Notes: generated from the sequence alone by a model not told the origin. A DNA stretch of 64,000 nucleotides from Neoconidiobolus thromboides FSU 785 (GCA_025603075.1 MU626297.1:73933-137932); one strand, 5' to 3'; shown: positions 337 to 64,000, counted from the first letter of the stretch. Translations and numbers: made by a program.

Positions 337-1210
337 ATGGCTTCTACAACAACTAAACTAATTGAGATTACAAATGAAGAAACTTTTGAGCAAATAATTC
401 AAGGAGAAGAAAATAAAAATAAAATATTAATATTCTATTTCTGGGCAAGTTGGGCTGATGGTTGTAAAGATATGGAACAAGTTCTAGTCACTTTAGCTGA
501 ATTATATCCTCAATTATGTTATTATAAGGTAAATCAGTTTTAAATTCAAAGATAAAAAAATAAATTTTAATCTTTTAATCTTTTAATCATAATAAAATAG
601 ATTGAAGCTGAAGAGTTACCCGATGTATCCGAAAGTTTTGATATTGATTCAGTACCAAGTTTTGTATTTATTAAAGTAAGTTAAGATGATTTGACTTTTA
701 AATTACAAATTAATTTTGATTTAGGGTGGAAAATTATTACAAACTATAATGGGAGCAAATGCTATTGAATTAACTGAAACGGTTGAAAAATATATTCAAT
801 TAATAGGCTCTAAAGTGAAGCCAAGAGTCGAAACATCCAAAGAAGATATCAATGAAAGATTAGAGAAATTAGTTAATTTAGATAAAGTTATGATCTTTAT
901 TAAAGGTTCACCAGAAGCACCTAAATGTGGGTTTTCTAGACAATTAATCAATATATTAAAAGAACAAGGGGTTCGTTATCAACATTTTGATATTCTTAAA
1001 GATGATCAAGTTAGACAAGGTAAGTTAATGATATAATAATAATAATAAATTAATTTTATTTTTATTTTAGGTTTAAAAAAATATTCTAATTGGCCAACTT
1101 ATCCTCAATTTTATGTTAATGGGGAGTTAATGGGTGGTTTAGATATTATTAAAGAAATGATTGATATGGAAGAATTTATTGATAGTATCCCTAAAGAAAA
1201 TAGAATTTGA
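337..1210 (+). CDS. GRX3: Monothiol glutaredoxin Grx3/4 (PICOT type; Trx + Grx domains), 4 exons
   Basis: Trx-like N-terminus (FWASWADGC) and Grx domain with [12 protein letters not shown] and [20 protein letters not shown] introns at 529-600, 676-724 and 1020-1070 give a continuous frame to TGA at 1208-1210. Confidence 0.95.
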
Positions 1211-1257
1211 AAGATTCAATATATAAAATATCCCACTTTTATTAAACAAAAATGATT

Positions 1258-1307
<50 letters not shown>

Positions 1308-1312
1308 TTATT

Positions 1313-2071
1313 TTATAATTTATCATTTAATAATAAACAACGGGCTATTTTTAACACAATTATTAAAATAGTTGATTCAGGTAATAAATTCTATAATAAA
1401 AGTGGAATATTAATATTAATATTAATAATATACAATATTAAAATAAGAAATAATACCCTGAATATTGGAACTAATTCATTATTATTTTGATTAGTTAATA
1501 TAGCTAAATAAAATTTAACTTGAAACTTAGTAAATCCTTCTAATATGTAAATTTGTTGAATGTTTTCAATTGGTATAAATAAGGTGGTTTTTGATGTTCT
1601 TTTAGTTGTTAATTGAATTCCTAATTGTGAAAATATTGTTACTGATTCTAAATAATATTTAATAATTATTATATTATTAATATTATATTAAATATATTTT
1701 ATTAATTACCATATTCTATCCTTTGATATTTGGAATAAATCATATTAAATAGAATAAACAAAAATAACAAATGAAACAACTAAATATAAAATGTAAATAT
1801 AAGATTATTAAAATAAACAAAATAAATAAAGATCAATAAAAACAAATAAACTTACTATTCCAATAAGATTTAATAAATAAAGAGTAAAATAGAGTATTAA
1901 GGTAATAGTTAATAAATAGTAATACTTTGTTTTACTTTGATTAATTATTTTTATCTTATAACAATTATTATCTATATTTTTGTATTCTATTTTATATTTA
2001 GACGTTATTATATCTAATTGCTTAATTAATTGTTCTATCTTTTCTTCTATAGGTATTGTTTCTTGCTTCAT
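1313..2071 (-). CDS. GPI15: GPI-GlcNAc transferase subunit PIG-H/Gpi15, spliced
   Basis: ORF 1808-2071 carries two TM segments. Downstream exons read ESVTIFSQLGIQ...LFIPIENIQQIYILEGFTKFQVKFYLAI and NLLPESTIL, the PIG-H domain signature. Confidence 0.8.
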
Positions 2072-2333
2072 ATTTATTTTATTATTTATATATAATAATG
2101 TTTAATTCTATTACAAATTAAAAGAGTATTGAATGAATTTTACTCAATTTTCTAATAAATAGTTTTATGATAAATAAGATTGTTATCTACCAATCAATTT
2201 CGAATTCATTTTTATCTTAACAAAATTGTAGAATAATCATAATAATAATCAAATATCAAAACAATCAAATATCAAAACAATCAAAAACACTTTTTTTATT
2301 TTTTATTTTTTATTTTTTATTTAAAAAGAAAAG

Positions 2334-3434
2334 ATGGAAAATGAATTTTTAAATTATTTATCTCAACTAGATCCCAATGAACAAAATAAATTTTTATTAC
2401 AACATGGTTTATTAAATCAAAATAATTTTACTTTTTTAAATAATAGTAATAATAATAATAGTAATAATAATCACCATCAAAATTTCATTAATTTGAATAA
2501 TAACTATTCAATACCAGCTACATTATCAATGTCAATTCAACCTGTGACCGAGAATATGACATTACAATTAAGGAATATTCAACCGACAACAGAGGACATG
2601 ACATTAAAACTAAGGAATATCCAACCTATTGTAGAGACTATATCTTCACAAGAAAGACCTTTGAATAAGATTAATAATAATAAATTAGTACCCACCCCAC
2701 GAAAAAGTAAAGTATGGAAATATTATTCAGAATTTAAAACTGAACAAGGTTTGGATAAATGTTTTTGTATTTTATGTGGAAGAGAATATTTTAATACAAC
2801 ATCTACTTCAACATTAAGAAGTCACCTTTTAGCAAGTCATAAAATTAATTTTAAAGCGGATTCAATGGAGATTAACTCACCAAGTATGGAGCAAGCGAAT
2901 AGGAATGATGTGAATGGTAACATTAATGATAATGGTAATAATAATAATGATAGTAATAATAGTAATAATAACATAGAAATGGGTAATATTAATTTTGGTA
3001 AAAAAAAAGAAATATTTCATAAATGTTTTAAAAAAAAGGGAATCAATAGTGAAAATGGAAAAAAAGAAATCGAGAAGTTTCAATGTTTATTTTGTAATAG
3101 TTTATTTTCTATTAAGACATCGTCAAGTATTTTATTATTACATATGAAAAGTAAACATGAACAAATGTTATTAGGAATAGTAGCTTTAAATGATATAAAT
3201 ACAATGAATACTACAATATCAAAACCTATAAACAAAGGTAATAATCCTAATTTTTATGAAAGTTTATGGTTACATTTTGAGAGAAAGAAAAATTTAGAAG
3301 ATAAAAAAGTATACTCTTGTAGATATTGTTCTCATTCTTATTCAAGAACTTGTAATTTTATTACTTTAATTAAACATTTGAAAAAATTACATAATATTCA
3401 TCTTGAAGTGGAAACAAATCCAAATTCAAATCCC

Positions 3435-3467
<33 letters not shown>

Positions 3468-3752
3468 TCACCTAAACTAGCAATGTCTCATACTGATGTA
3501 TCAATTAACTCATTAGAAGAATTATGTGTATTTAAAACTGAAGAAGTTAAAAGGAATTCCATGTTCATTTTGAGTGATTGGTTAAAAGCAAATAATCTAA
3601 CAATAAGTTTAAATAAGAATCATGCTTTAAATGAATTTTTGTTTTGTATTGATAATAGTATTAATTTAAATCAATTAAATGAAGATAATAGTCAACGTAG
3701 AATATTAAAAGATAGTCGAAATAAAGAATTGTTTCAAACTACAATCATAGGA

Positions 3753-3850
<98 letters not shown>

Positions 3851-5462
3851 AAGTATAGAAAAAGAAAATAGTAATTATTATTTATATTCAAAAGATCAAA
3901 AGATTAAACAGTGTATGTTTTGTTTAACGTTATTTAGTGAAGAAACTTCGGAATTCACATTAAATCGACATTTACATGAAAGTCATAAACAACTATTTAT
4001 TAATACAATTCAATTAATTCCAAATTCAAGCCAAGATATGGCATTAGCAATAATGGCTAGTAAATTTTTAATACAAGAATTAAAATCAAATCTTATTTTG
4101 CAGCAAGAATTATTTTTAAAATATTTAATTATAAAAGAAATACCAATTTCAATATTTGAATCAAATCAAATTATTCAAGCTATTGATTATTTATATCAAC
4201 AAATTGAAATTAGTATGAAACAATTAATACTTAATACAACTTCAGATATTATATTATGTTTAGAATTTTTACCTTTATTACCTGTGGGTAGTTCTATGAT
4301 ATTAAGTTTATATTTTAAAGATAATAAATATAAAAAGAAAAAAATAATATTAGAAATTGTTAATTATAAAGTGGATATATTACAAATTCAACCAGAATGG
4401 ATTCAAATGAAAATTAAAGATATTTTAGTAAAATTTGATATCAATGAATTAAGAATTATTAGTTTATTAATTAGTATTAATAATAATAATAATAATAATA
4501 AAGATAATAATAATTCACAACAATCTTTATCTTCAATTCATCATAATTTCTTAGAACAACTTCAGTATCAATTAAATATAATGGGATTTAATACAAATAT
4601 ATTATATTTTTATTGTCAATTAAAACAATTAAATAATAATTTAATAGATATATTTTATAAACATCCCATTATTAATAAAGTATTAAAAGGATTAAGATTG
4701 AATAAATTAATAATTAATAATTTTAATTTAATTTCCAATGGTCAATTAATATTAAATAAATTAAAATCTATAGAAATTGTTAATGAATTAATAAATAATT
4801 TGGAACTTAGTATTACTATGGAAGATATTAATAAAGTTCAAGAAATTTTAGAAATCTTAATTACAATTCAATTTAATAGTGATCAACTGTATAACAATTC
4901 ACAAGTAACATTAGCTCAAGCTTATATAAGTAATCGTAATTTTTTATTAAATTTACAAACTTTATTAAATCAACAAATAAGTAATTCCAATAATATATTT
5001 ACAAAACTTGAGCAAAGTATTAACTCTATACCTAATTTACAAATTAGTTTATGTTTATTATTAGATCCAAGGTATAAATTAGGTCCAACTACATTAAAAA
5101 GTAAATGTGAGTATTTAAAATGGCTACAATTAAGCTATATTCAATGTTGTTTAAGAAATCAAAATAATAATAATAATTATTTATTAAATAATAATAATAA
5201 TAATAATAATAATAATTTACAATCCGAATTAGAGTTATATTTAAGTATGCCATTAATTAATCCCATAATTAAACCTATTAATTGGTGGTTGATGGTACAG
5301 TATCGATTACCTTTATTATCAAATATTGCTATTTGTTTATTAAATATACCAAGTTATACTAAATTAGGAGATAATATATTATTAAATTTTAATCAATATG
5401 ATCAATTTTGTAATATAACAATTAAACAAATTATCATTAACTGGGCATTTAATCAAAATTAA
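2334..5462 (+). CDS. Intronless 1042-aa ZBED-like protein: four BED zinc fingers plus degenerate hAT transposase core and hAT dimerization domain (domesticated transposase)
   Basis: BED fingers: SKVWKYY..CILC..HLLASH; CLFC..HMKSKH; SLWLHF..CRYC..HLKKLH; CMFC..HLHESH. Also LLDPRYK and ELELYL..PINWW..PLLSNIAICLLNIP. DDE, CxxH and SERxFS motifs are not recognisable. Confidence 0.8.
2535..2636 (+). repeat. 42-bp coding tandem repeat (~2.4 copies; IQPxTExMTLxLRN)
   Basis: attcaacctgtgaccgagaatatgacattacaattaaggaat / attcaaccgacaacagaggacatgacattaaaactaaggaat / atccaacct... Confidence 0.9.
3753..3848 (+). repeat. (AAT)32 microsatellite encoding poly-Asn
   Basis: Perfect AAT run inside the ZBED-like ORF. 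Many shorter AAT/TTA runs occur at 1258-1305, 3436-3466, 7405-7445, 30663-30710, 32500-32563 and 36110-36212. Confidence 0.95.
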
Positions 5463-5682
5463 ACATTATTAATATTATTAACAACAATAATAATAACTGG
5501 TATTTCTATTTCTTTATGTTTATATAGCTTCTCAATTCTCTTTTTTGTTTTATTAATAAATTTAAAATTATAATAAATAAATAAATAAATAACATCTATT
5601 TTTCTATTTTATTTTATTTTATTTTATTTTAAAAATAATAATTCTATGTTTTTTTATTTTTTTTTATTTTTTTTTATTAATA

Positions 5683-6504
5683 TTAAACTTTACCATCAAA
5701 TTTATATTCTTTTAAATAAGCTTTATAAGCTAATTTTAATACATATTGTTGCGATGGATCTAACCAAGTTAAAATAGGTTCAGGAGATAATGGATACATA
5801 ACATCAAATATATTAAACCAAGCTTCAAATGTTTTCTTACTTTTATTTTCTTCGTTATTATTATTATTGTTATTTTCATTATAAACAAAGCCTTTAACTA
5901 ATTTAATTAATAAATAATTTAAATGTTGATTAAAATTCTTATTTTTTTTCATTGCTGATAAACTTTGTAATAACCTATAAAAGTGAGTTGAACATTCTAT
6001 AGTTGATAATTTTAATAATAGTTGGATTAGTGTAGGTTCAAAACTAGTTAGTTCTTCATAATGAGATTTCATTAATTGAGATACTATATTACAATGAATT
6101 TCATCATATGTTGGATGTAATGGTATACTTTCTAATATTGTTAATATAATTTCAATTTCATTAGAATGTAAAATATATTCCTATTAATTATTGATAAATG
6201 AAAACATTATTATTATTATTATATTAATCATTACCTTATTAAATATAATTACTTCAATAATTTGAATTATTAATTTAATTATCTCATTATTATTATTATT
6301 ATTATTTACTAATAATAATACTTGAGATAAATAATCTAATACTTTATTTAAATTACGTGAGATTAATTTCTTGGTACCTGTTAAAATTAAAAAACAACAA
6401 GAATTAATAAATATTTTAATAAATAGATTATTAGAATATATTAATTACTTACCTTCTAATCCAAATTTAAAACAAAAATAATAAAAATATAAACTACTAT
6501 AAAT

Positions 6505-6537
<33 letters not shown>

Positions 6538-7402
6538 ATTTTGAATTAATCTATTCATTCCTAAATTTAAACAAGAGTCCCATTGAGTAGATGATAATCT
6601 ATTAGTAAATTGAATAATTAATTGAATAATACAATTTAAATTGTCCTCTTGATTTTTAATTTGTAATGAAGTTGAATTTTGACTTAATGAATATTCAAAA
6701 CTTAATAAAATAGAACTTAATATTGGCAGTAAAATGGAGTTTTCTAGAAAATGAATCGGATATGATTGAATTAAAATTAAATGTAACTGAAATAATCTTT
6801 GAATTATTATTAAATTATTAGGATTATTCTTTGTAAAATTTGATTGTAATTGATGATAATATTGTATTGATTGTAATAATATAAATTCATATTGTTTATT
6901 TTGTAAATTATTATTGCTTAAACTATTACTTAAATTATATAATATTATTAAATCAAATAATTCTAAAAATTTATTTAATAAATTATTTGGATTACTATTA
7001 TCATTATTATAATCATTGTTATTATTTGTAATTGTATTAAATATATGTTCTATCTTAACCCATACTTTTTTGATTATTTGATTGAATATTATATTAATTA
7101 ATGATATTGATTTTAATCTATAAATAAATAAATAATCATATAATATATATTATGTATTAATTTTACCTTTGTAAGTTATTTAAAGAATTTAATGCTAATT
7201 CCATAGCAATGATACTAGATTGTCTACATTCATTATCAAAAGTATTATTTTCTTTTTTTATTGTTAATGTGTTATTTAAAAATTCTAAAATGAATTCATC
7301 TTGTTTATCTGATTGGCTTTTATTTAATTGATTTCCTAAATTTAATAAATATTGTCGAATACCAATTGATAATACTTTATTTAATTTTAATTTTAATTGT
7401 TG

Positions 7403-14230: not shown

Positions 14231-14893
14231 CCTTAAACGATGAATTATATTTAAATGAGACTATACTCTTTATATTTTATTTTAGATTTACATTGATCAT
14301 TCTTATGGTACACATACCTCATACTTATAGCAAGTCAAATTTTATCTTTACTGTAAATTGTATCAAACATTTGTTATAATAATAACCTTAAGCAAAGTTG
14401 TCATTTATGAAATTATCAACTTTTACTATTGTTTTTTATTTTGAGCTCCTATCCTTGAATTATATAAATCAGTGGAATAAACGTAATGCGGATTTGAATT
14501 CATCCACAATTATGTAGTAATATTACACCAGAAAAAAAAAGAAAGGTATTAGATATATTCCAGATAAAATAAAGTTATGAGAAATAAGTATTTTCAAAAG
14601 GTTCATTATATGAAACAAAGGTGAAGGGTGAGGCTATTTAACACACACAAGAGTTTATTCTATTTGGTTGCATTTTTTTGTCCAAAAATTTTACTAACAA
14701 TCTTGAACAAAAAAATACATCCTCATATGCTTAACTATTGGAATTTGACTAGAAAATATAAAAAATTTAAAATATAAAAACTTTGTCATTTTTAACCAAT
14801 TAAAGTTGAATTAAACCTAGCTTTGTATAATAATTTAACAGCAAACACAAAACTATAAATGTAATGTATTTTCAAAAAACAGTTTTTCAAAAT

Positions 14894-14990
14894 AGGGATA
14901 TTTTTTTTACTTCATTATTTTTCCATTTTTTAAGCGCTATTTGAATAGAAAGATTGTTAGTAAAATTCTTAAACACAAAGAAACACCCTC
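14894..14990 (+). mobile_element. ~97-bp MITE copy, TSD AAAT
   Basis: AAAT|AGGGATATTTT...AAACACCCTC|AAAT; internal sequence homologous to the other copies. Confidence 0.8.
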
Positions 14991-23270: not shown

Positions 23271-23371
23271 TTGAATGTATTTTTTTTGGCTTTATCACTT
23301 TTTCCGTTTTTTAAGTGCTATTTGAGCGGAAAAGTCCTTAATAAAATCCTTAAACACAAAAATATATCCCG
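23271..23371 (+). mobile_element. MITE copy (degenerate left end)
   Basis: TTTTTTTGGCTTTATCACTTTTTCCG..AAGTGCTATTTGAGCGGAAAA..AAATCCTTAAACACAAAAATATATCCC matches the family consensus. Confidence 0.75.
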
Positions 23372-29824: not shown

Positions 29825-30662
29825 TTAATTAAAAGAATAAGATTTAGCTACTCTTTTTATAAAGTGTTTATATTGTAAGTAATTCATATTCTTACTTAAT
29901 GAATAATATTTAATTAATTGTGATTTAATCCAATTTTTCAATTGATTTTTTAATTGTGTATTATTGAATTTATAATCTTTATGAAATAATAATATATTAG
30001 AAAAGATTATTAAAACTATTTTTTGAATTGTAATGTAAGTAATAGATTCTAATTTCATTGTAGTGTTATTTAGTTTGTCATTCTTTTTTTTTAATAAAAT
30101 TAAATTGACTCTATTAATGTTGATTTTTGGTTGAATATATTTCCATGTTTTATATATAAGTTGTTTAATAATATCTAAAAATTAAAATATTAATATGAAG
30201 TTGTATTTAACTTTAAAAAAATACCTACTTAACATAGCAGATAGATTTAATTTATAGGACAATTTATTAATAAATACTATTAATTTTTGTATTATATTTA
30301 ATATTAAATGATAAATATTATGTTTAATTCCTTTCATTCGAGTTTGGTAATAATTTTGAAATAACTTTGGTTCTATAAACTTCATATTCTTTTTTATGTT
30401 TTTTAATTGAAACATTTGATTTTGAAGTTTTAATCCAATTAATCTATTTATTATATATTTCATTAATATTATATTTATTATACAACAATAATTATATATT
30501 ATATTTAATTACCTTATTAATTTTGGTATAACTTTTTTAGTAGCCCCATTAGTATAATCCATTGTAAAACTATTAATACAAGTATTGAAATTTAATTCTG
30601 AATTATTATTTAATAAAACTTGTAAATTATTAGTATCAATTAAATAACCACACCAAGGAAAT

Positions 30663-30711
<49 letters not shown>

Positions 30712-32503
30712 CTTCTGTTGTTTCATAATCATAAAATTCATTATTATAAGCTAATGTTTTTAAATAAATTGGCAGTTGAAAGTTTGTTAATGTTTTTGTT
30801 GGATTAATATAACAACCATATTTTGATATTCCCAAGTGCATTTTTTTTATAAATTTTAATACATTTAATTTACTTGTTGATATTATTAAAAAATCATCTG
30901 TCATTCTTAATATTAAATTATTATTATTGTCATTGAACTCATTTAAAAATTGAGATTGAATAAATGAATAATATAATCCACATAATAAACTTGATATTAT
31001 AGACCCTTGTGGTATTCCGTTCATTTGTATATAGAAATCATTATCTAACTAAATAAAATAAAAAAAATGAAAAAATTTAAATATTCTATTTTATTATTAT
31101 ATTTAATATGAAATTACCTTAACGATATTATTTAATAGATGTTGTTCAAGTACATTTAATAACTCCTTTTTACTTTTAATACTATCTAATTTTTGATTGA
31201 TTATAATATTATCTTTTAAACTTATATTATAATCTTTCATTTCTTGTGGAATTACTAATTGAGTATGTTTTTTTATATATAATCGTTTATGATTTGATTG
31301 ATTTAATTTCAATGTTAATAATTTAAAATAATAATAATTTTCAGACAATATAAACTCATTTGTTAATTTCAATAAATGCTCATGTGACATTCGATCATAA
31401 CATTGTTCAATATCTACTTTACCGAAATAAAATGAACTTGTTGTTTTTATTTTTGAATTATTTTTTAGAAAAGTATTTAATTGTTCATGAATTTCAGTTA
31501 TTCCTAACATTGAACCCTGAAATTTATTTAATTGAAATCTCTTTTCACATTTTAAACTTAAGAAACAATTATATAACGCTTGATTAACTGATTTAATCTT
31601 AAGTTGACTATCATTTTTTATTATCGTTATTAGTTATTATTATTATTATTATTATTATTTACTCTAAATAATACCCAAATGATTTTACATTTGAATTAGT
31701 TATTAATCTTAATATACCACCATTCTTTGGTATAAATCTACCATAACCGAATCCAAATCCTCTACTTTGACATATTTGTTTAATTTCATCCTATAATAAA
31801 TAATAATAAATAATAATAAATAATAATAAATAATAACTTACACTTTTAATTTTAATAAAAATATTATCTTTTTCTAATTTAATTTTATGCTCTTGTTTCA
31901 TTTTATTCCAAACATCAAATCTATAATAACATAATTTATATTTCATATGTTGATGTTCAGTTACATAAAAATTAAATCCAATTAAAGGTAAAACTATATC
32001 ATTAATTAACCATAATATAAAAGAACATAATAATTTTAATTGTTTCTTTTTATATGTTATAGGTTGTGTTTTAATTTCATTTATATCTAAAAATAATAAC
32101 TTAATTGTTTGTATAAAAAATAATGTATTTTATATTACTTGAATTATAATTAAGCCAACTTATTTCATTTATTTTGATATTTTGTATCCAATTATTTAAA
32201 TTATTTACTTCATATTTAGTTGCACTCAAAAATATTTTAATATTTTTTTCAAAAATAATATAATTCTTAATATTTCCAAAAATATAAGGCGGTAGTAGTC
32301 TTTTTAATATATTAGTTACAAATTTATATATTTGTTCATGACTGTTTGGTAAATTATAATTATTGTTAATTGGACAATAATTATCAAATAACTGATTATA
32401 TTGAACTTTATATCGATGATTTTTAATAATTTTTTTTAATATTGATTTAAATTTTAATAATGAATTTGGTATAAATGTATTATTAAATTGATTTGAATTA
32501 TTA

Positions 32504-42395: not shown

Positions 42396-42494
42396 GGAGA
42401 TGTTTTTTTTGGTTTTATTGTTTTTCCATCTTTTAAACGCTTATTTGAGTGGAAAAATTGTTAGTAAAATTCTTAGACAAAAAGACATATCCTC
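42396..42494 (+). mobile_element. 99-bp MITE copy, TSD ATAT
   Basis: ATAT|GGAGATGTTTT...ACATATCCTC|ATAT. Confidence 0.85.
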
Positions 42495-42578: not shown

Positions 42579-43042
42579 TGTGAAATCTAGTACTCAGTGA
42601 TTGGAGTCAACAACAATTATTGCTTAGTTGACTATACTGTAAGTCGAAAGGTCTTAGTTTATGTGACTAAGATAGACTTGAATTATGAAGAATACCACGT
42701 AATAGACTACAGACTATGTAAAACAAATAGAACAGACAATAATAATGTAAAATCTACGTAAAATACTATTAAGGAAACTTATTGGGCTTATTAAATGTTC
42801 GAGATATCAGGGAATAATTCAGTTAAAAAGCCTAGAGCTATTATGTTTTATAATCTCTTTTATACTCCGATAACTATAAATATCAAAACGAGAGGATTAT
42901 ATTTTTTGAGACAAAGATAGAACTTCTCTTAGCAAATCAGAATAAGAGCATGGGACTAATTATCCCTATAATTGAGAACACAACAGCTTAGGAAATTATT
43001 ATACTATAATTAGCCATGGGGCTGACAAAGCGATGTTTCACA
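42579..43042 (+). mobile_element. ~460-bp LTR-like dispersed element (solo LTR or non-autonomous TIR element)
   Basis: Termini TGTGAAA...TTTCACA; colinear homology with 58765-59219 and 63441-63905; no TSD seen. Confidence 0.7.
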
Positions 43043-44110
43043 TAGGGATGTTTTTTTATATTTTAATGGTAGATCATAATATTAGTATTTTATTATTAAT
43101 TATTTTTAAATAGTTATGTTGACTTTTATTTAAAAAAATATATTAAAGCTATAGTTGATAGTAGTGTCATTTATCGGTTTTTACTTGTTTCCTTTGAAAT
43201 ATTAATTTTTACACTATTTGATTAAATTCATTATTAGAATAATAAATTCTAATAATTTTATTGTTATCATTATATCATGAAACTTCATAAGCTCTGGGTT
43301 ATTATAAACAATTGTTAAAAATAATACAAATGAATTACAATGTTTGTATAATGTGTTTTTCCTTATTATATTAAAATTTAGTTATAAAAGCTTGCATCTT
43401 ATTTTTATTAAAATAAAAATAATATAAAACATATAATTAAAAAAATTAATTATTTAAAAAAAAATAAAGTAGTTGAAATAAGTCTTTTAAGTTAAATAAA
43501 AAGATTTAATTTCAAGCTTTTTAAATTTAACCATATAATAAAGACTTACAAATTTAAACTTAAATTTAGATCGATTTTCAAATTCTGAAACTAATTTAGA
43601 CATCCCTGTATGTTGCTTTTACTTTATTTTCATAGTAAATTGAAGTTGATTTAAGATATGATTTGCATTATTAATTTCTTATATATCTTATTTATTATTA
43701 AAGTATACAAGTTGAATAAATATCAGTTGAATTCTTGGAAAAAAAGCATACTCCTAGGGTATTATTACTAGATCATTTCTCACTATTTCCATCCAATACC
43801 CCCTTTTATCTATAAATCTTTTTAAAAAAAAACAAAACACTGCCTGTTTAAAAGAGAAATATAAAAAAATGCGCCCAATTGGTTTTATAACAAATCAAAA
43901 CTACCTTAAAGCAGGATGTTTTTATAATGATAATTAAAAATGTTATAGTAAATTAATTTAGAATTATATTTTTTAAATACTACTAAATAATACGTTAGTC
44001 CATTATTTAACTTTAACTTTAACTTTAACTTTAACTTTTTATGTTATTCATCCTGTATTTTATTGCTTATATCATTGTAACATAATGTAAGTCTATCTAT
44101 CAATTTTTAT

Positions 44111-53792: not shown

Positions 53793-53888
53793 GCGGATAT
53801 ATTTTTGTGTTTAAGGATTTCACTAACAATTTTTCCACTCAAATAGCGCTTAAAAATGGAAAAAACAATGAAGCCAAAAAACATCCCC
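53793..53888 (-). mobile_element. 96-bp MITE copy, TSD ATTT
   Basis: ATTT|GCGGATATATTT...AAAAAACATCCCC|ATTT. Confidence 0.85.
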
Positions 53889-58500: not shown

Positions 58501-58599
58501 TGAAATGTATTTTTTGTTTTAAGAATTCTATTAATAATGTTTCCACTCAAATAGTGCTTAAAAGATTAAGAAAGTGATGAAGCCAAAAAAAATAGCTTT
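58501..58599 (-). mobile_element. 99-bp MITE copy with decayed termini, TSD ATAT
   Basis: ATAT|TGAAATGTATTTTTTG..CCACTCAAATAGTGCTTAAAAG..GAAGCCAAAAAAAATAGCTTT|ATAT. Confidence 0.75.
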
Positions 58600-58764
58600 A
58601 TATAATTAGTTAAATTTAAAAAGCTTAAAACTAAATAAAAATAAAATAAAATGAAAAAATAAAAATTAGAATTTATTACTAATATAAATTCAGTTAAGCG
58701 ATATATATAATTAATACTTCAAAAAAATAGAAAAAGTGATGAAGTCAAAAAAATACCCCCATAT

Positions 58765-59219
58765 TGAAATCTGGTACTCAGTGGCTGGAGTCAAAAGCAG
58801 TTCCTGCTTGATTAATTAATTGTAAGTCAAGAGGTCTTAGTTTATGTGACTAAGATAGACTTGAATTATGAAGAAAAGCACACAATAGGCTACGGACTAT
58901 GTAAGATAAATAGAATAGACAATATTATTGTAAAATCTATGTAAAATACTATCAAAAAGACTTAGTAGGCTTATTAAAAGTACCATATCAAAGAATAATC
59001 CAATTAAAAAGTCTTGAGTTACTATATTCTAAAATCCCTTTTATACTCCAAGTACGGATACCAAAGCGAAAGGATAATATTCTTTGTAATGAAGTTGGAA
59101 GTTCTCTCAGCAAATCAAAACAAGAGACTCTGAATTGATTGTGCCTGAACTTGAGAACATAACAACTTAAGTGATTGTTATGTTATAATCAGTCATAGAG
59201 CTGACAGAACAATATTTCA
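58765..59219 (+). mobile_element. ~455-bp LTR-like element copy
   Basis: TGAAATCTGGTACTCAGTG...GCTGACAGAACAATATTTCA, colinear with 42579-43042. Preceded by a MITE half ending at 58760. Confidence 0.75.
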
Positions 59220-59225
59220 AAATAT

Positions 59226-59320
59226 AGGGATGTTTTTTCTTGATTTCATTATTTTTCCGTTTTTTAAATTCTATTTAAGTGGAAAAATTGTTAATAAAAT
59301 TCTTAAAAAAATATATCCCC
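59226..59320 (+). mobile_element. 95-bp MITE copy, TSD ATAT
   Basis: ATAT|AGGGATGTTTT...ATATATCCCC|ATAT. Confidence 0.85.
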
Positions 59321-59542
59321 ATATAGTAAATATTTTAATAATTTAAAAGATAAAGCAGTAGTTAGGTTAATATTTTTTAAACATATATTAAGTAATTTTA
59401 AAAATATAGGAAGAAAAACAAATTTATATAATATATGTATCTAGTATATAGGTAGAAAAAAGCCATTTAAAATAGAGCAAATATAATAATAAAAAATAAA
59501 ATAATAAGAATTATATAATAATTTTGGACTTCAAATAAAATA

Positions 59543-59635
59543 CGGGGTGTTTTTTTGGTTTTATTACTTTTTTCTTTAAGCACTATTTAAGCAGAAATAT
59601 TACTAGTAAAGTTCTTAAATGAAAAAACATATTCT
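59543..59635 (+). mobile_element. 93-bp MITE copy, TSD AATA
   Basis: AATA|CGGGGTGTTTT...AACATATTCT|AATA. Confidence 0.7.
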
Positions 59636-60523: not shown

Positions 60524-62151
60524 ATGGTGATTAGTTATTGTTTTTTAATTTATTACGGCCAACAGATGGATAGCTTTTCAGATAATGATGGAGAATTTTA
60601 TGAAGAGAATAGTGATATTGAATACGATTCTGATAGTGGAATGGTAGATGAAATAGGTGACTCGTTTGAGCCATTAGAAAAAGAAAAAAAGAAAAAAAAA
60701 ATGTATGAGTGTGAATTTAAGATGTTCACCCCAGAAGAATTACGCGAATATCAGGATAAGGAAATTACAGCAATAAATGATATATTTGGGCTAGATAAAG
60801 CTTTAATTGGGATTTTATTGAGAAAATATCGCTGGAACAGAGATAAGCTTACTGAATTGTTAAGCGATGACCCGGATAACACTTATAAAAAATCAGGAAT
60901 TGATATCATATTAGATAAGGGAGATTTTGAACCAGAAATTAAAGAAGAAACCGATTTTTTTTGTAACATATGCTGTAACGATTCTCCAAATCAAAAAGTG
61001 GTCAAGTTTTATTGTGGAGTTGATGTTTGCTTTGATTGTCATAAAACTTACCTTGAGCAGAAAATTTATGATGGTGGTTCCAGAGCTATAGTTTGTCTAA
61101 CTAATTGCGGTGTTCCGTACAAAGATGACACTATTAAAAACATTGTTAGTACTTTTAATTATGAAAAGTAAGTAGTTTTTTATCTTTATTTTTATTTTAA
61201 TTAATATTATAATATAGATATTTAGAATGTAATGATAAAATATTTGTACAAGATAAGTCCTATTTTAAATGGTGCCCATTACCTGAATGTAAAAACGCTG
61301 TGTATTGCGAGGTACCACCATCTTCGTTAACAACCTTTGTGCCCTCAGTTAAATGCCAAAGTGATCATTCATTTTGTTTTGGTTGCTTACGTCAAGATCA
61401 TTCCCCGTGCTTATGCTTTTATGCAGATTTATGGATAAAAAAGTGTGAAGATGATTCAGAAACAGCAAATTGGTTAAATGCAAACACCAAAGAATGCCCA
61501 AAATGTGGCTCAACTATTGAAAAGAACGGTGGTTGTAACCATATGACTTGTCGTAAATGTACCAATGAATTCTGTTGGGTATGTATGGGATCGTGGGCTC
61601 AACATGGACAAGCTTGGTATAATTGCACTAGATATGATGAAAAAGAAGGTGCAGATGCAAGAAACAAGCAAGAGGAATCGAGGAGAAACTTGAAAAGATA
61701 CCTCCACTATTATAATCGTTATATGAACCATCTCCAAAGTTCTAAGTTAGATCAAGATCTTTATGCTCGTACTGAGAATAACATGGAGCTTATGCAAAAA
61801 GAATCAGAGCTCTCATGGATAGAAGTACAATTTTTAAAGAGTGCCGTGGATACCTTAGTAGAGTGTAGACACACCTTAATGTGGAGTTACGCATTTGCCT
61901 ATTATCTAGCTAGAGATAACTCTGCTTATTTGTTTGAGAACAATCAACAAGATTTAGAACTTAATACAGAAGCTTTATCTGGACTGCTTGAAGAGCCAAT
62001 TGAAAAGGATACAATTTCGATATTAAAGCAAAAAGTTCTAGACAAAGCTTTTTATGTTAGCCAGCGCAGAGATATTTTGCTTGAAGATGTTATGAAAGGA
62101 TTCCAAGAAGATCGTTGGGCTTATAACACTGATATGAAGAAACCTTTTTAG
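60524..62151 (+). CDS. ARI1: Ariadne-type RBR E3 ubiquitin ligase (ARI1/Hel1), spliced
   Basis: Acidic N-terminus, UBA-like region, RING1, IBR (WCPLPEC..C..H.FCFGC..DHSPC), RING2 (ECPKC..IEKNGGCNHMTC..EFCWVC) and Ariadne domain (RYLHYYNRYMNH). Alternative start ATG at 60566. Confidence 0.96.
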
Positions 62152-62521: not shown

Positions 62522-62619
62522 GGAGATGTATTTTTGTATTTGAGAATTTTACCAACAATTTTTTCACTTGAATAGCGCTTAAAAGATGGAAAAAGTAATG
62601 AAGCCAAAAAAAACACCCC
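62522..62619 (-). mobile_element. 98-bp MITE copy, TSD ATAC
   Basis: ATAC|GGAGATGTATTT...AAAAACACCCC|ATAC. Confidence 0.85.
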
Positions 62620-63267: not shown

Positions 63268-63365
63268 AGGGGTGTTTTTTTGGCTTCATCGCTTTTTTTA
63301 TCTTTTAAGCGCTATTTAAGCGAAAAAATTGTTAGTGAAATCCTTAAACATAAGAATATATACCT
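63268..63365 (+). mobile_element. MITE copy (TSD not clean)
   Basis: AGGGGTGTTTTTTTGGCTTCATC..AAGCGCTATTTAAGCG..AAATCCTTAAACATAAGAATATATACC. Confidence 0.8.
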
Positions 63366-63440
63366 ATACTCTTTAACATAATAGTTAAAAGCTTTTTTAA
63401 ATCATTTTGTATACTATATTTTTTATATATAGCTTATAAG

Positions 63441-63905
63441 TGTGAAATCTGGTACTCAGTGTTTGGAGTCAAGAGGTCTTAGTTTATATGACTAAGATAG
63501 ACTTGAATAATAGCACATAATAGGCTACGGACTATGTAAGATAAATAGAATAAACAATGCTACTATAAAATCTACGTAAATACTATCAAAAAGACTTAGT
63601 AGGCTTATTAAAAGTACCATATCAAAGAATAATCCAATTAAAAAGTCTTGATTTACTATATTCTAAAATCTCTTTTATACTCCAAGTGCGGATACCAAAG
63701 CGAAAGGATAATATTCTTTAATATATCGAACATTTAACAGACTCTCTAAGTTTACTTAATAGTATTTTACGTACATTTTACATTAGTATTGTCCGTTTTA
63801 TTTATCTTATATAGTCCGTAGCCTATTATGTGCTATTATTCAAGTCTATCTTAGTCATATAAACTAAGACCTCTTGACTCCAAACACTGAGTACCAGATT
63901 TCACA
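63441..63905. repeat. Terminal inverted pair of 5' parts of the 460-bp element (forward 63441-63719, reverse ~63706-63905)
   Basis: 63441-63535 is the exact reverse complement of 63811-63905 (95 bp). Confidence 0.92.
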
Positions 63906-64000
63906 GTTAGGGTTAGGGTTAGGGTTAGGGTTAGGGTTAGGGTTAGGGTTAGGGTTAGGGTTAGGGTTAGGGTTAGGGTTAGGGTTAGGGTTAGGGTTAG
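63906..64000 (+). repeat. Telomere, (TTAGGG)n: 15 full units plus a partial unit to the window end
   Basis: Perfect TTAGGG array, G-rich strand running 5'->3' toward the end. Confidence 0.98.

Follow-up and report, generated by a model that had tools for sequence, protein, structure and literature searches.

Telomere repeats begin at the exact termini of a dispersed LTR family at more than half of the assembled chromosome ends of Neoconidiobolus thromboides

How does a chromosome come to end, to the base, on the last nucleotide of a dispersed mobile element? This question is raised by one end in the draft genome of Neoconidiobolus thromboides FSU 785, a short-read assembly of 24.6 Mb in 799 contigs. 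We analysed a stretch of 64,000 nucleotides with a G+C content of 24% (the window), which corresponds to C40:73933-137932; the contig is 137,932 bp long, so that base 64000 of the window is also the contig end. The telomere occupies positions 63906–64000 on the plus strand and consists of one G (63906), a pure (TTAGGG)15 array that is perfect from 63907 to 63996, and a final TTAG that runs out at the end of the contig. The terminus of the window is a true chromosome end. An earlier note, made from the sequence alone, had claimed that the telomere adjoins the exact terminus of a mobile element and that its repeat unit is GTTAGGG. The first claim is borne out, as the last unique base, 63905, is the final A of ...CCAGATTTCACA, with which the consensus of a dispersed LTR family terminates; the unit itself has to be corrected to the hexamer TTAGGG, with a single G between the terminus and the array. 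The last gene before this end, an Ariadne-type RBR E3 ligase at 60524–62151 (+) that comprises two ORFs with UBA_ARI1, IBR and Ariadne domains, stops ~1.75 kb from the telomere, and the C40 end consequently has almost no subtelomeric buffer.

The last ~465 bp before the telomere had been described as an inverted repeat made by two opposed copies of a 460-bp element, and positions 63441–63905 do form a quasi-palindrome. Both element copies are partial, however, and the orientation that had been taken as forward is in truth the reverse of the element. The first copy, delimited by BLAST against reference LTR copies, lies at 63441–63719 on the minus strand and carries positions 461 down to ~140 of the LTR, with its U5 terminus (TGTGAAATCTGG on the plus strand) at 63441, beside unique flank. 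The second, at 63710–63905 on the plus strand, carries positions ~221–461 and ends with the U5-terminal ...CCAGATTTCACA that stops at 63905; it begins ~40 nt past the TATA box of the LTR, TATAAAAG, and would thus roughly correspond to R-U5. Segment 400–430 of the reference LTR is absent from both fragments. They meet at 63706–63719, where the centre junction GATAATATTCTTT/AATATATCGAAC (in wider context GATAAYATTCTTT/AATATNTCRAAC, the slash here and below marking the junction) falls on a short self-complementary AATATT motif.

An inverted-repeat search places the arms of the palindrome at 63437–63580 and 63766–63909, with a length of 144 nt and 93% complementarity. Base-by-base alignment of the outer arm (63441–63547, which pairs with 63799–63905) resolves this figure into two parts: 63441–63535 and 63811–63905 are identical at 95 of 95 positions, with 107 of 108 identical up to 63547, and identity then falls abruptly to ~72%. 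When the terminal 465 bp are folded as single-stranded DNA, the predicted structure has a dG of -144 kcal/mol (z -31), in line with the hairpin-forming ability that had been proposed for them.

The arms are also mosaic in their affinities. The inner part of the minus arm (63581–63720) is 97.8% identical to a full-length solo LTR that lies 4.6 kb inside the end (58765–59223, minus strand, with MITE termini on both flanks), compared to only 87% for the outer part, which matches the outer part of the other arm at 93.5%, the two outer parts being mutually closest. For the inner part of the plus arm, the best match (89%) is the LTR that adjoins the telomere of contig C221. An older copy of the family, likewise a full-length solo LTR, was identified by sequence match at 42579–43044, also on the minus strand. 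Together, the mosaic arms and the sharply bounded identity block of 95–107 bp argue for repeated gene conversion among neighbouring LTRs, with the solo LTR at 58765–59223 as the conversion partner of 63581–63720. We conclude that the terminal 465 bp are two 5'-truncated, inverted LTRs of different lineages, whose outer 95–107 bp have been homogenised by gene conversion, and that the palindrome at C40 is a secondary product of adjacent inverted LTR fragments and conversion rather than the capping mechanism.

Judged by its sequence features, the ~460-bp repeat is the LTR of a Ty3/gypsy-type (Metaviridae) retrotransposon. Dozens of copies share the constant ends TGTGAAAT...ATTTCACA (TG..CA, a short terminal inverted repeat), with U3 starting as TGTGAAATATCGC... 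and U5 ending as ...CCAGATTTCACA; in reverse, the U3 terminus reads ...GCGATATTTCACA. Genome-wide, 622–664 candidates were detected, approximately one per 37 kb, and at least 40 copies were scored. Perfect target duplications of 4–5 bp flank 13 of 20 copies of the youngest subfamily and 15 of 34 copies in a broader sample, telomeric ones included, and a weight matrix built from the 15 duplicated sites, intended to predict the register at telomeres, yielded no usable target consensus.

The sole internal region found in the assembly lies on contig C168 (locus L076, G000:C168:36000-43717), where the element spans 679–7262 and the internal region 1342–6658, in the order LTR, TT, primer-binding site (PBS), 1486-aa ORF, SH3_Tf2-1 ORF and LTR, with both LTRs in direct orientation. 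The 1486-aa ORF contains a weak gag match, a dUTPase-like segment, RVT_1, RT_RNaseH_2 and Integrase_H2C2 (zinc finger), and the integrase core, between the two ORFs, is interrupted by at least four stop codons. The PBS, TGGCGCTCATAACTAGG, begins 2 nt past the upstream LTR and is complementary at 16 of 17 positions to the 3' end of tRNA-Asn(GTT) plus CCA; this 3' end is common to 11 gene copies, three of which were confirmed by ARAGORN. At the position of the polypurine tract, upstream of the 3' LTR, there is only a short ...CATAGGG run. The two LTRs of C168 lack a matching duplication. Their similarity to each other and to the family is only ~76%, indicating that the C168 element is an old relative rather than the origin of the young burst of copies described below.

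A Pfam RVT_1 search of the whole assembly gave two matches, the gypsy-type pol of C168 and one degenerate fragment, and a corresponding search with Pfam rve gave no match, because the only integrase core carries stops. With the exception of C168, the primer site follows none of the 48 U5 ends sampled, which indicates that the family consists almost wholly of solo LTRs. In the window itself, degenerate RVT_1 pieces (E 3e-8 and 2e-4) split by stops are located at 30509–31510 (−), inside a 28–34 kb stretch of 16–21% G+C; tblastn with the C168 pol found no match in the window or in the other loci examined, and these fragments probably derive from a decayed retroelement other than the C168 type. 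An ORF of 1042 aa at 2334–5462 (+), with a BED zinc finger and no further Pfam match, may be transposase-derived, and a tRNA scan of the 64-kb window returned no tRNA.

By pattern search we identified 14 chromosome ends in the assembly, consisting of 12 contigs with TTAGGG arrays and 2 that end in TTAGGG/ATAGGG arrays, all sampled in a draft whose telomere arrays stop at ~90 bp. At 8 of these 14 ends the telomere repeats abut an exact LTR terminus, the U5 end in two cases and the U3 end in six. The earlier note had named recurrence of the junction at other telomere-adjacent sequences as the check on its reading, and the TTTCACA/GTTAGGG junction of C40 does recur, at C221. Both of the U5-type junctions (C40 and C221) read CACA/G/TTAGGG, while four of the six U3-type junctions, in which the U3 terminus is reversed, read CACA/AGGG/TTAGGG (C51, C100, C213 and C308); the remaining two are one-base variants, with AAGG at C124 and AGAG at C685 before TTAGGG. 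The register is therefore fixed per terminus type, although the U3 and U5 termini share the same end, ATTTCACA.

None of the 14 telomeres starts within the body of an LTR, a genome-wide pattern search for telomere repeats up to 10 nt inside any LTR terminus gave 0 matches, and no LTR copy in the assembly has telomere repeats on both sides. Chance is excluded as an explanation, because at most ~1,300 LTR termini exist in 24.6 Mb and a random position would match one of them with p ~5e-5. On the inner side, the terminus of the telomeric LTRs is complete and borders a unique flank that differs between ends, with homology between ends ceasing at the LTR boundary, and at no telomeric LTR does the inner flank repeat the four telomere-side bases. 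Complete inner termini lacking both duplication and inner repeats mean that these LTRs are neither intact insertions into arrays nor insertions at array boundaries. Plain integration at the boundary between telomere and subtelomere was also considered and ruled out, as the inner flanks hold no matching 4-bp duplication.

The other six ends show ordinary-looking junctions, five of which end in G, GG or GGG. LTRs are concentrated near chromosome ends in general: 13 of the 14 ends have a copy no more than ~2 kb away, as compared to approximately one candidate per 37 kb genome-wide, and these near-end copies have normal target duplications wherever this can be checked. Two further features of the ends were observed. 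An ATAGGG variant is mixed into, or replaces, the innermost repeats at the start of C17, the end of C213, the end of C308 and the start of C685 (loci L061, L068, L077 and L078), with the longest run, (ATAGGG)12, at C308. The non-LTR ends C44 and C254 (16210–16298 in the latter; loci L062 and L070) have in common an AT-rich segment of ~80 nt, 77% identical, that reaches the junction, and in C254 this segment separates the telomere from an LTR U3 terminus.

The draft nature of the assembly raises the concern that a short-read assembler mis-joined telomere reads or the inverted arm of the palindrome. The arrays do break off at ~90 bp, a perfect inverted repeat of 95–107 bp is difficult for a de Bruijn graph, and scaffolding errors do occur, as seen at C66:57341-57394 and C254:16299-16392 (L064 and L070), where telomere arrays run straight into N; both are telomere-ended contigs, counted among the 14 ends, that scaffolding has connected to other sequence, probably wrongly. 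An artefact of this kind is nonetheless scarcely credible: the eight junctions lie on eight distinct LTR sequences with differing flanks, the palindrome centre is unique sequence with a second copy, 15–19% diverged, at C17, and whichever way the inverted repeat is resolved, the telomere still sits on the U5 terminus. A seemingly 'interstitial' telomere at C66 was ruled out, since its array borders an N gap and the contig is telomere-ended.

We searched the whole assembly for the centre-junction pattern of the palindrome and found it only at C40 and at C17:837-867. The C17 palindrome has arms of 226 nt that are 99.6% alike, with a MITE inserted at the centre; it is located 0.47 kb inward from its contig's telomere, in flanks unrelated to those of C40, and the two palindromes are 81–85% alike. 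The palindrome is old and real, occurs at two ends, and is not a general cap. It is a possibility that this unit, bounded by two U5 termini, arose as an aberrant snap-back product of reverse transcription and was itself mobilised.

The earlier note had drawn on MoTeR, TRAS and SART for a telomere-specific element, and had alternatively suggested a recurrent palindromic cap; in such a reading, a dedicated element targets telomeres or cuts ends, or a hairpin or cruciform protects them. Recurrence of the junction, the strong hairpin predicted for the terminal 465 bp and the presence of a palindromic unit with two U5 termini at two ends with unrelated flanks would all agree with it. The distribution of these structures does not, because the terminal palindrome is confined to 2 of 14 ends, with an internal position at C17, and the remaining seven LTR-capped ends carry simple solo LTRs, including C221, where the LTR at the telomere is simple and complete, so that no palindrome is needed for the junction. 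Furthermore, the repeat is a Ty3/gypsy-type LTR dispersed genome-wide, with at least 40 interstitial copies in the young burst alone, without an endonuclease or other non-LTR features, without two-sided telomere repeats and with 0 insertions within telomere arrays. Both forms of this reading are thus largely refuted, and we consider them very improbable.

The relationships among the telomeric LTRs were examined in a maximum-likelihood tree of 56 LTR copies and in difference maps whose baseline was the most frequent base at each column among 20 natural LTR copies. The C51 copy is a member of a young burst with at least 40 interstitial copies (93–95% identity) and is nested within it in the tree; C100 is just basal to the burst, C213, C308 and C685 form a small clade, and C124 and C221 are further basal. 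The two arms of C40 group with older lineages, except that the plus arm points to C221 in its inner part. By their placement in the tree, the eight telomeric LTRs all go back to a single sublineage, situated at the base of the young burst or close to it. No variant was found to be confined to the telomeric LTRs (best uncorrected p 0.0036), and their telomere-side thirds are no more similar to one another than to interstitial copies. An old, star-like spread may be compatible with these null kinship tests, as the telomeric copies have long branches.

Copying between ends is demonstrated for one pair only, C308 and C685, whose LTRs fall in one clade and have a TGTA variant at the terminus, and whose telomeres both carry a TTAGGG(ATAGGG)n array. 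Recombination is evident at other ends too: the C213 LTR is a mosaic whose U5 third is 98.6% like young copies, whereas its U3 (telomere-side) third reaches 88–90%, and the ~80-nt segment common to C44 and C254 points the same way. In this compact genome, LTR recombination shapes the chromosome ends. In an alternative history, one or two chance healing events at LTR termini, followed by break-induced replication of the LTR-plus-telomere unit between ends, would suffice, with no step specific to a retrotransposon. The uniform register within each junction type, the clear relationship of C308 and C685 and the frequency of gene conversion among subtelomeric LTRs are what such a history would leave behind; however, two founders would have had to fall on the exact terminal bases of U3 and U5, with a probability of ~(2/460)^2 even given breaks inside LTRs, the telomeric LTRs lack a shared-variant signal, and the similarity between the LTRs of C40 and C221 is only 82% over 200 nt. 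We regard this history as quite improbable.

A further pattern concerns the sequences that LTR termini adjoin elsewhere in the genome. An abundant MITE of ~93 bp, with termini of the type ATGGGGATG...CATCCCCAT, is present in at least 10 copies in the window. One copy, at 63269–63361, lies 80 bp from the terminal LTR and has an inverted counterpart at 62526–62619, and the solo LTR at 58765–59223 is flanked by MITE sequences at 58722–58759 and 59224–59307 with facing termini; further copies lie at 14892–14982, 23281–23367, 42404–42490, 53797–53888, 58505–58591 and 59540–59619. Genome-wide, LTR U3 ends adjoin the G-run of the MITE (CACA/ATGGG, 10 cases) far above chance, and this flank is the most frequent one at interstitial sites. 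More generally, LTR termini are found at G-runs several-fold over expectation, and the same preponderance of U3 is seen at interstitial sites (20 U3 versus 8 U5) and at telomeres (6 versus 2). The polarity of ...ACATCCCCAT/TGTG at MITE ends is also the same as that of ...AACCCT/TGTG at telomeres. The idea that the MITE G-run itself had served as a telomerase seed was rejected, as interstitial U3 termini read CACA/AGGG in no case and no telomeric junction reads ATGGG.

The G-run pattern bears directly on the main rival explanation, in which the integrase, with a preference for G-runs, inserts the LTR element into telomeric repeats, and the inner telomeric tract is subsequently lost by recombination with a resident subtelomeric LTR. 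The several-fold excess of G-run abutment with its U3 bias, and the polarity common to MITE-end and telomere junctions, would be expected under this explanation, as would LTRs near 13 of 14 ends with normal duplications where checkable; it also accounts for the U3- and U5-specific registers and requires no action of telomerase on a non-telomeric end. On the other hand, it demands a second event for each independent junction, and the corresponding intermediates, with telomere repeats on the inner side, number 0 in the assembly. The AGGG or GTTA duplication is missing from the inner flanks, the spacing from U3 to the G-run is mostly 0 or 2 nt at interstitial sites but 1 nt at telomeres, and target sites are generally without clear consensus. 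Insertion followed by loss of the inner tract is, in our judgement, unlikely, if by no means far-fetched.

The account that we prefer, tentatively and at somewhat below an even chance, is that LTR-terminated DNA ends were capped by telomerase and then spread between chromosome ends by LTR homology. We favour it because the only DNA species known to us that ends at LTR termini is the linear cDNA of the retrotransposon. In a first step, one-ended integration near a chromosome end would leave a free LTR-terminated end, the CA-3' of the linear cDNA; alternatively, an eroded end might copy a cDNA or LTR template to its final base. Telomere repeats would then have capped such ends a few times, while one LTR sublineage was active. 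Finally, the LTR-plus-telomere units would have moved to other ends through break-induced replication or gene conversion driven by LTR homology, and copying of this kind would hold the junction register constant for each terminus type. Capping followed by spread would leave exact termini in either orientation and complete inner ones, with neither duplications nor inner repeats and with a register that is constant for each terminus type, as observed. The mechanism first suggested for C40, a cut at the element terminus with de novo telomere addition, is possible in a modified form, in which the cut is replaced by an LTR-terminated cDNA or a half-integration end.

Several observations weigh against the preferred account. 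With the terminal A as its point of alignment, telomerase would be expected to begin with GGG, whereas the junctions read CACA/AGGG and CACA/G. Moreover, we found no full-length element at any of the 14 ends and no active integrase gene. The telomeric LTRs have no exclusive shared variants, and their telomere-side thirds show no special closeness to one another, so that spread by descent is demonstrated for C308 and C685 alone. The broader proposition, that LTR-DNA termini with their integrase-defined CA ends act as direct and recurrent substrates for end-making, by telomerase capping or by strand transfer into repeats, is one that we advance with more doubt than conviction.

What gives the question its weight is that at more than half of the assembled ends the telomere starts exactly on the terminal base of an LTR, which points to a mechanistic link between integrase-defined ends and the formation or repair of chromosome ends. 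If LTR termini are indeed substrates for end-making, an LTR element would have repeatedly built or repaired most chromosome ends, and this would constitute a third retroelement route to chromosome ends, beside target-primed insertion by non-LTR elements and the endonuclease-deficient Penelope-like elements. A literature search returned no report of telomeres beginning at exact LTR termini. To our knowledge, all well-described links between retroelements and telomeres involve non-LTR or Penelope-like elements that prime reverse transcription on the chromosome end, and LTR elements had been known only for a subtelomeric preference (Ty5) or for aiding the survival of telomerase mutants. A link of the LTR type thus appears to be new, as we found such links described only for other retroelement classes.

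Among known systems, chromosome healing adds telomere repeats to non-telomeric DNA with an ambiguity of 0–4 nt, at sites that are normally scattered. The six non-LTR ends resemble ordinary healing in this sense, whereas 8 of the 14 junctions are confined to two exact nucleotides of a single repeat family. Integration of LTR elements at specific positions is known to occur by tethering, as for Ty3 at Pol III start sites and Tf1 at Sap1 sites. The N. thromboides family similarly hits one exact point, the MITE terminus, far above chance and with an orientation bias; unlike in Ty3 and Tf1, the target is a G-run at the MITE end, and any relevance to telomeres is our own extrapolation. In yeast, Ty cDNA is captured at double-strand breaks, and we know of no description in which telomerase caps an LTR cDNA terminus. 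Ty1 cDNA has also been found in telomerase-negative survivors, in the form of Y'-Ty1 chimeras (cited in PMC4700185). The likeness lies in the use of LTR-retrotransposon cDNA as material or template for end repair; the Ty1 cases concern mutants or induced breaks, whereas in N. thromboides the junction is a standing structure of most ends.

Retrotransposons at chromosome ends have been reviewed, and the non-LTR cases include HeT-A/TART, TRAS/SART and L1 at dysfunctional telomeres (PMC4700185). MoTeR of Magnaporthe (PMC7367193) and FoTeR of Fusarium (PMC12857005) are non-LTR elements that reside within telomere arrays, and TRAS/SART of Bombyx are telomere-repeat-specific non-LTR retrotransposons (PMC7265360). 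As in these systems, many ends show a retroelement terminus that meets the telomere repeats in a constant register. MoTeR, FoTeR and TRAS/SART, however, bring their own endonuclease and reverse transcriptase and insert by target-primed reverse transcription inside the array, leaving repeats on both sides, while the junctions described here are formed by LTR termini, without inner repeats and without an ORF of that kind. The closest LTR counterpart in location is Ty5 of Saccharomyces, which is targeted to telomeric heterochromatin through an integrase-Sir4 interaction (PMC4700185). Both are LTR elements that survive mainly as solo LTRs and cluster within a few kb of the chromosome ends. Ty5, for which telomere repeats starting at its exact terminus have not been reported, is of the Ty1/copia type and makes subtelomeric insertions with normal duplications, whereas in N. 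thromboides the element is of the Ty3/gypsy type and its terminus is itself the junction with the telomere.
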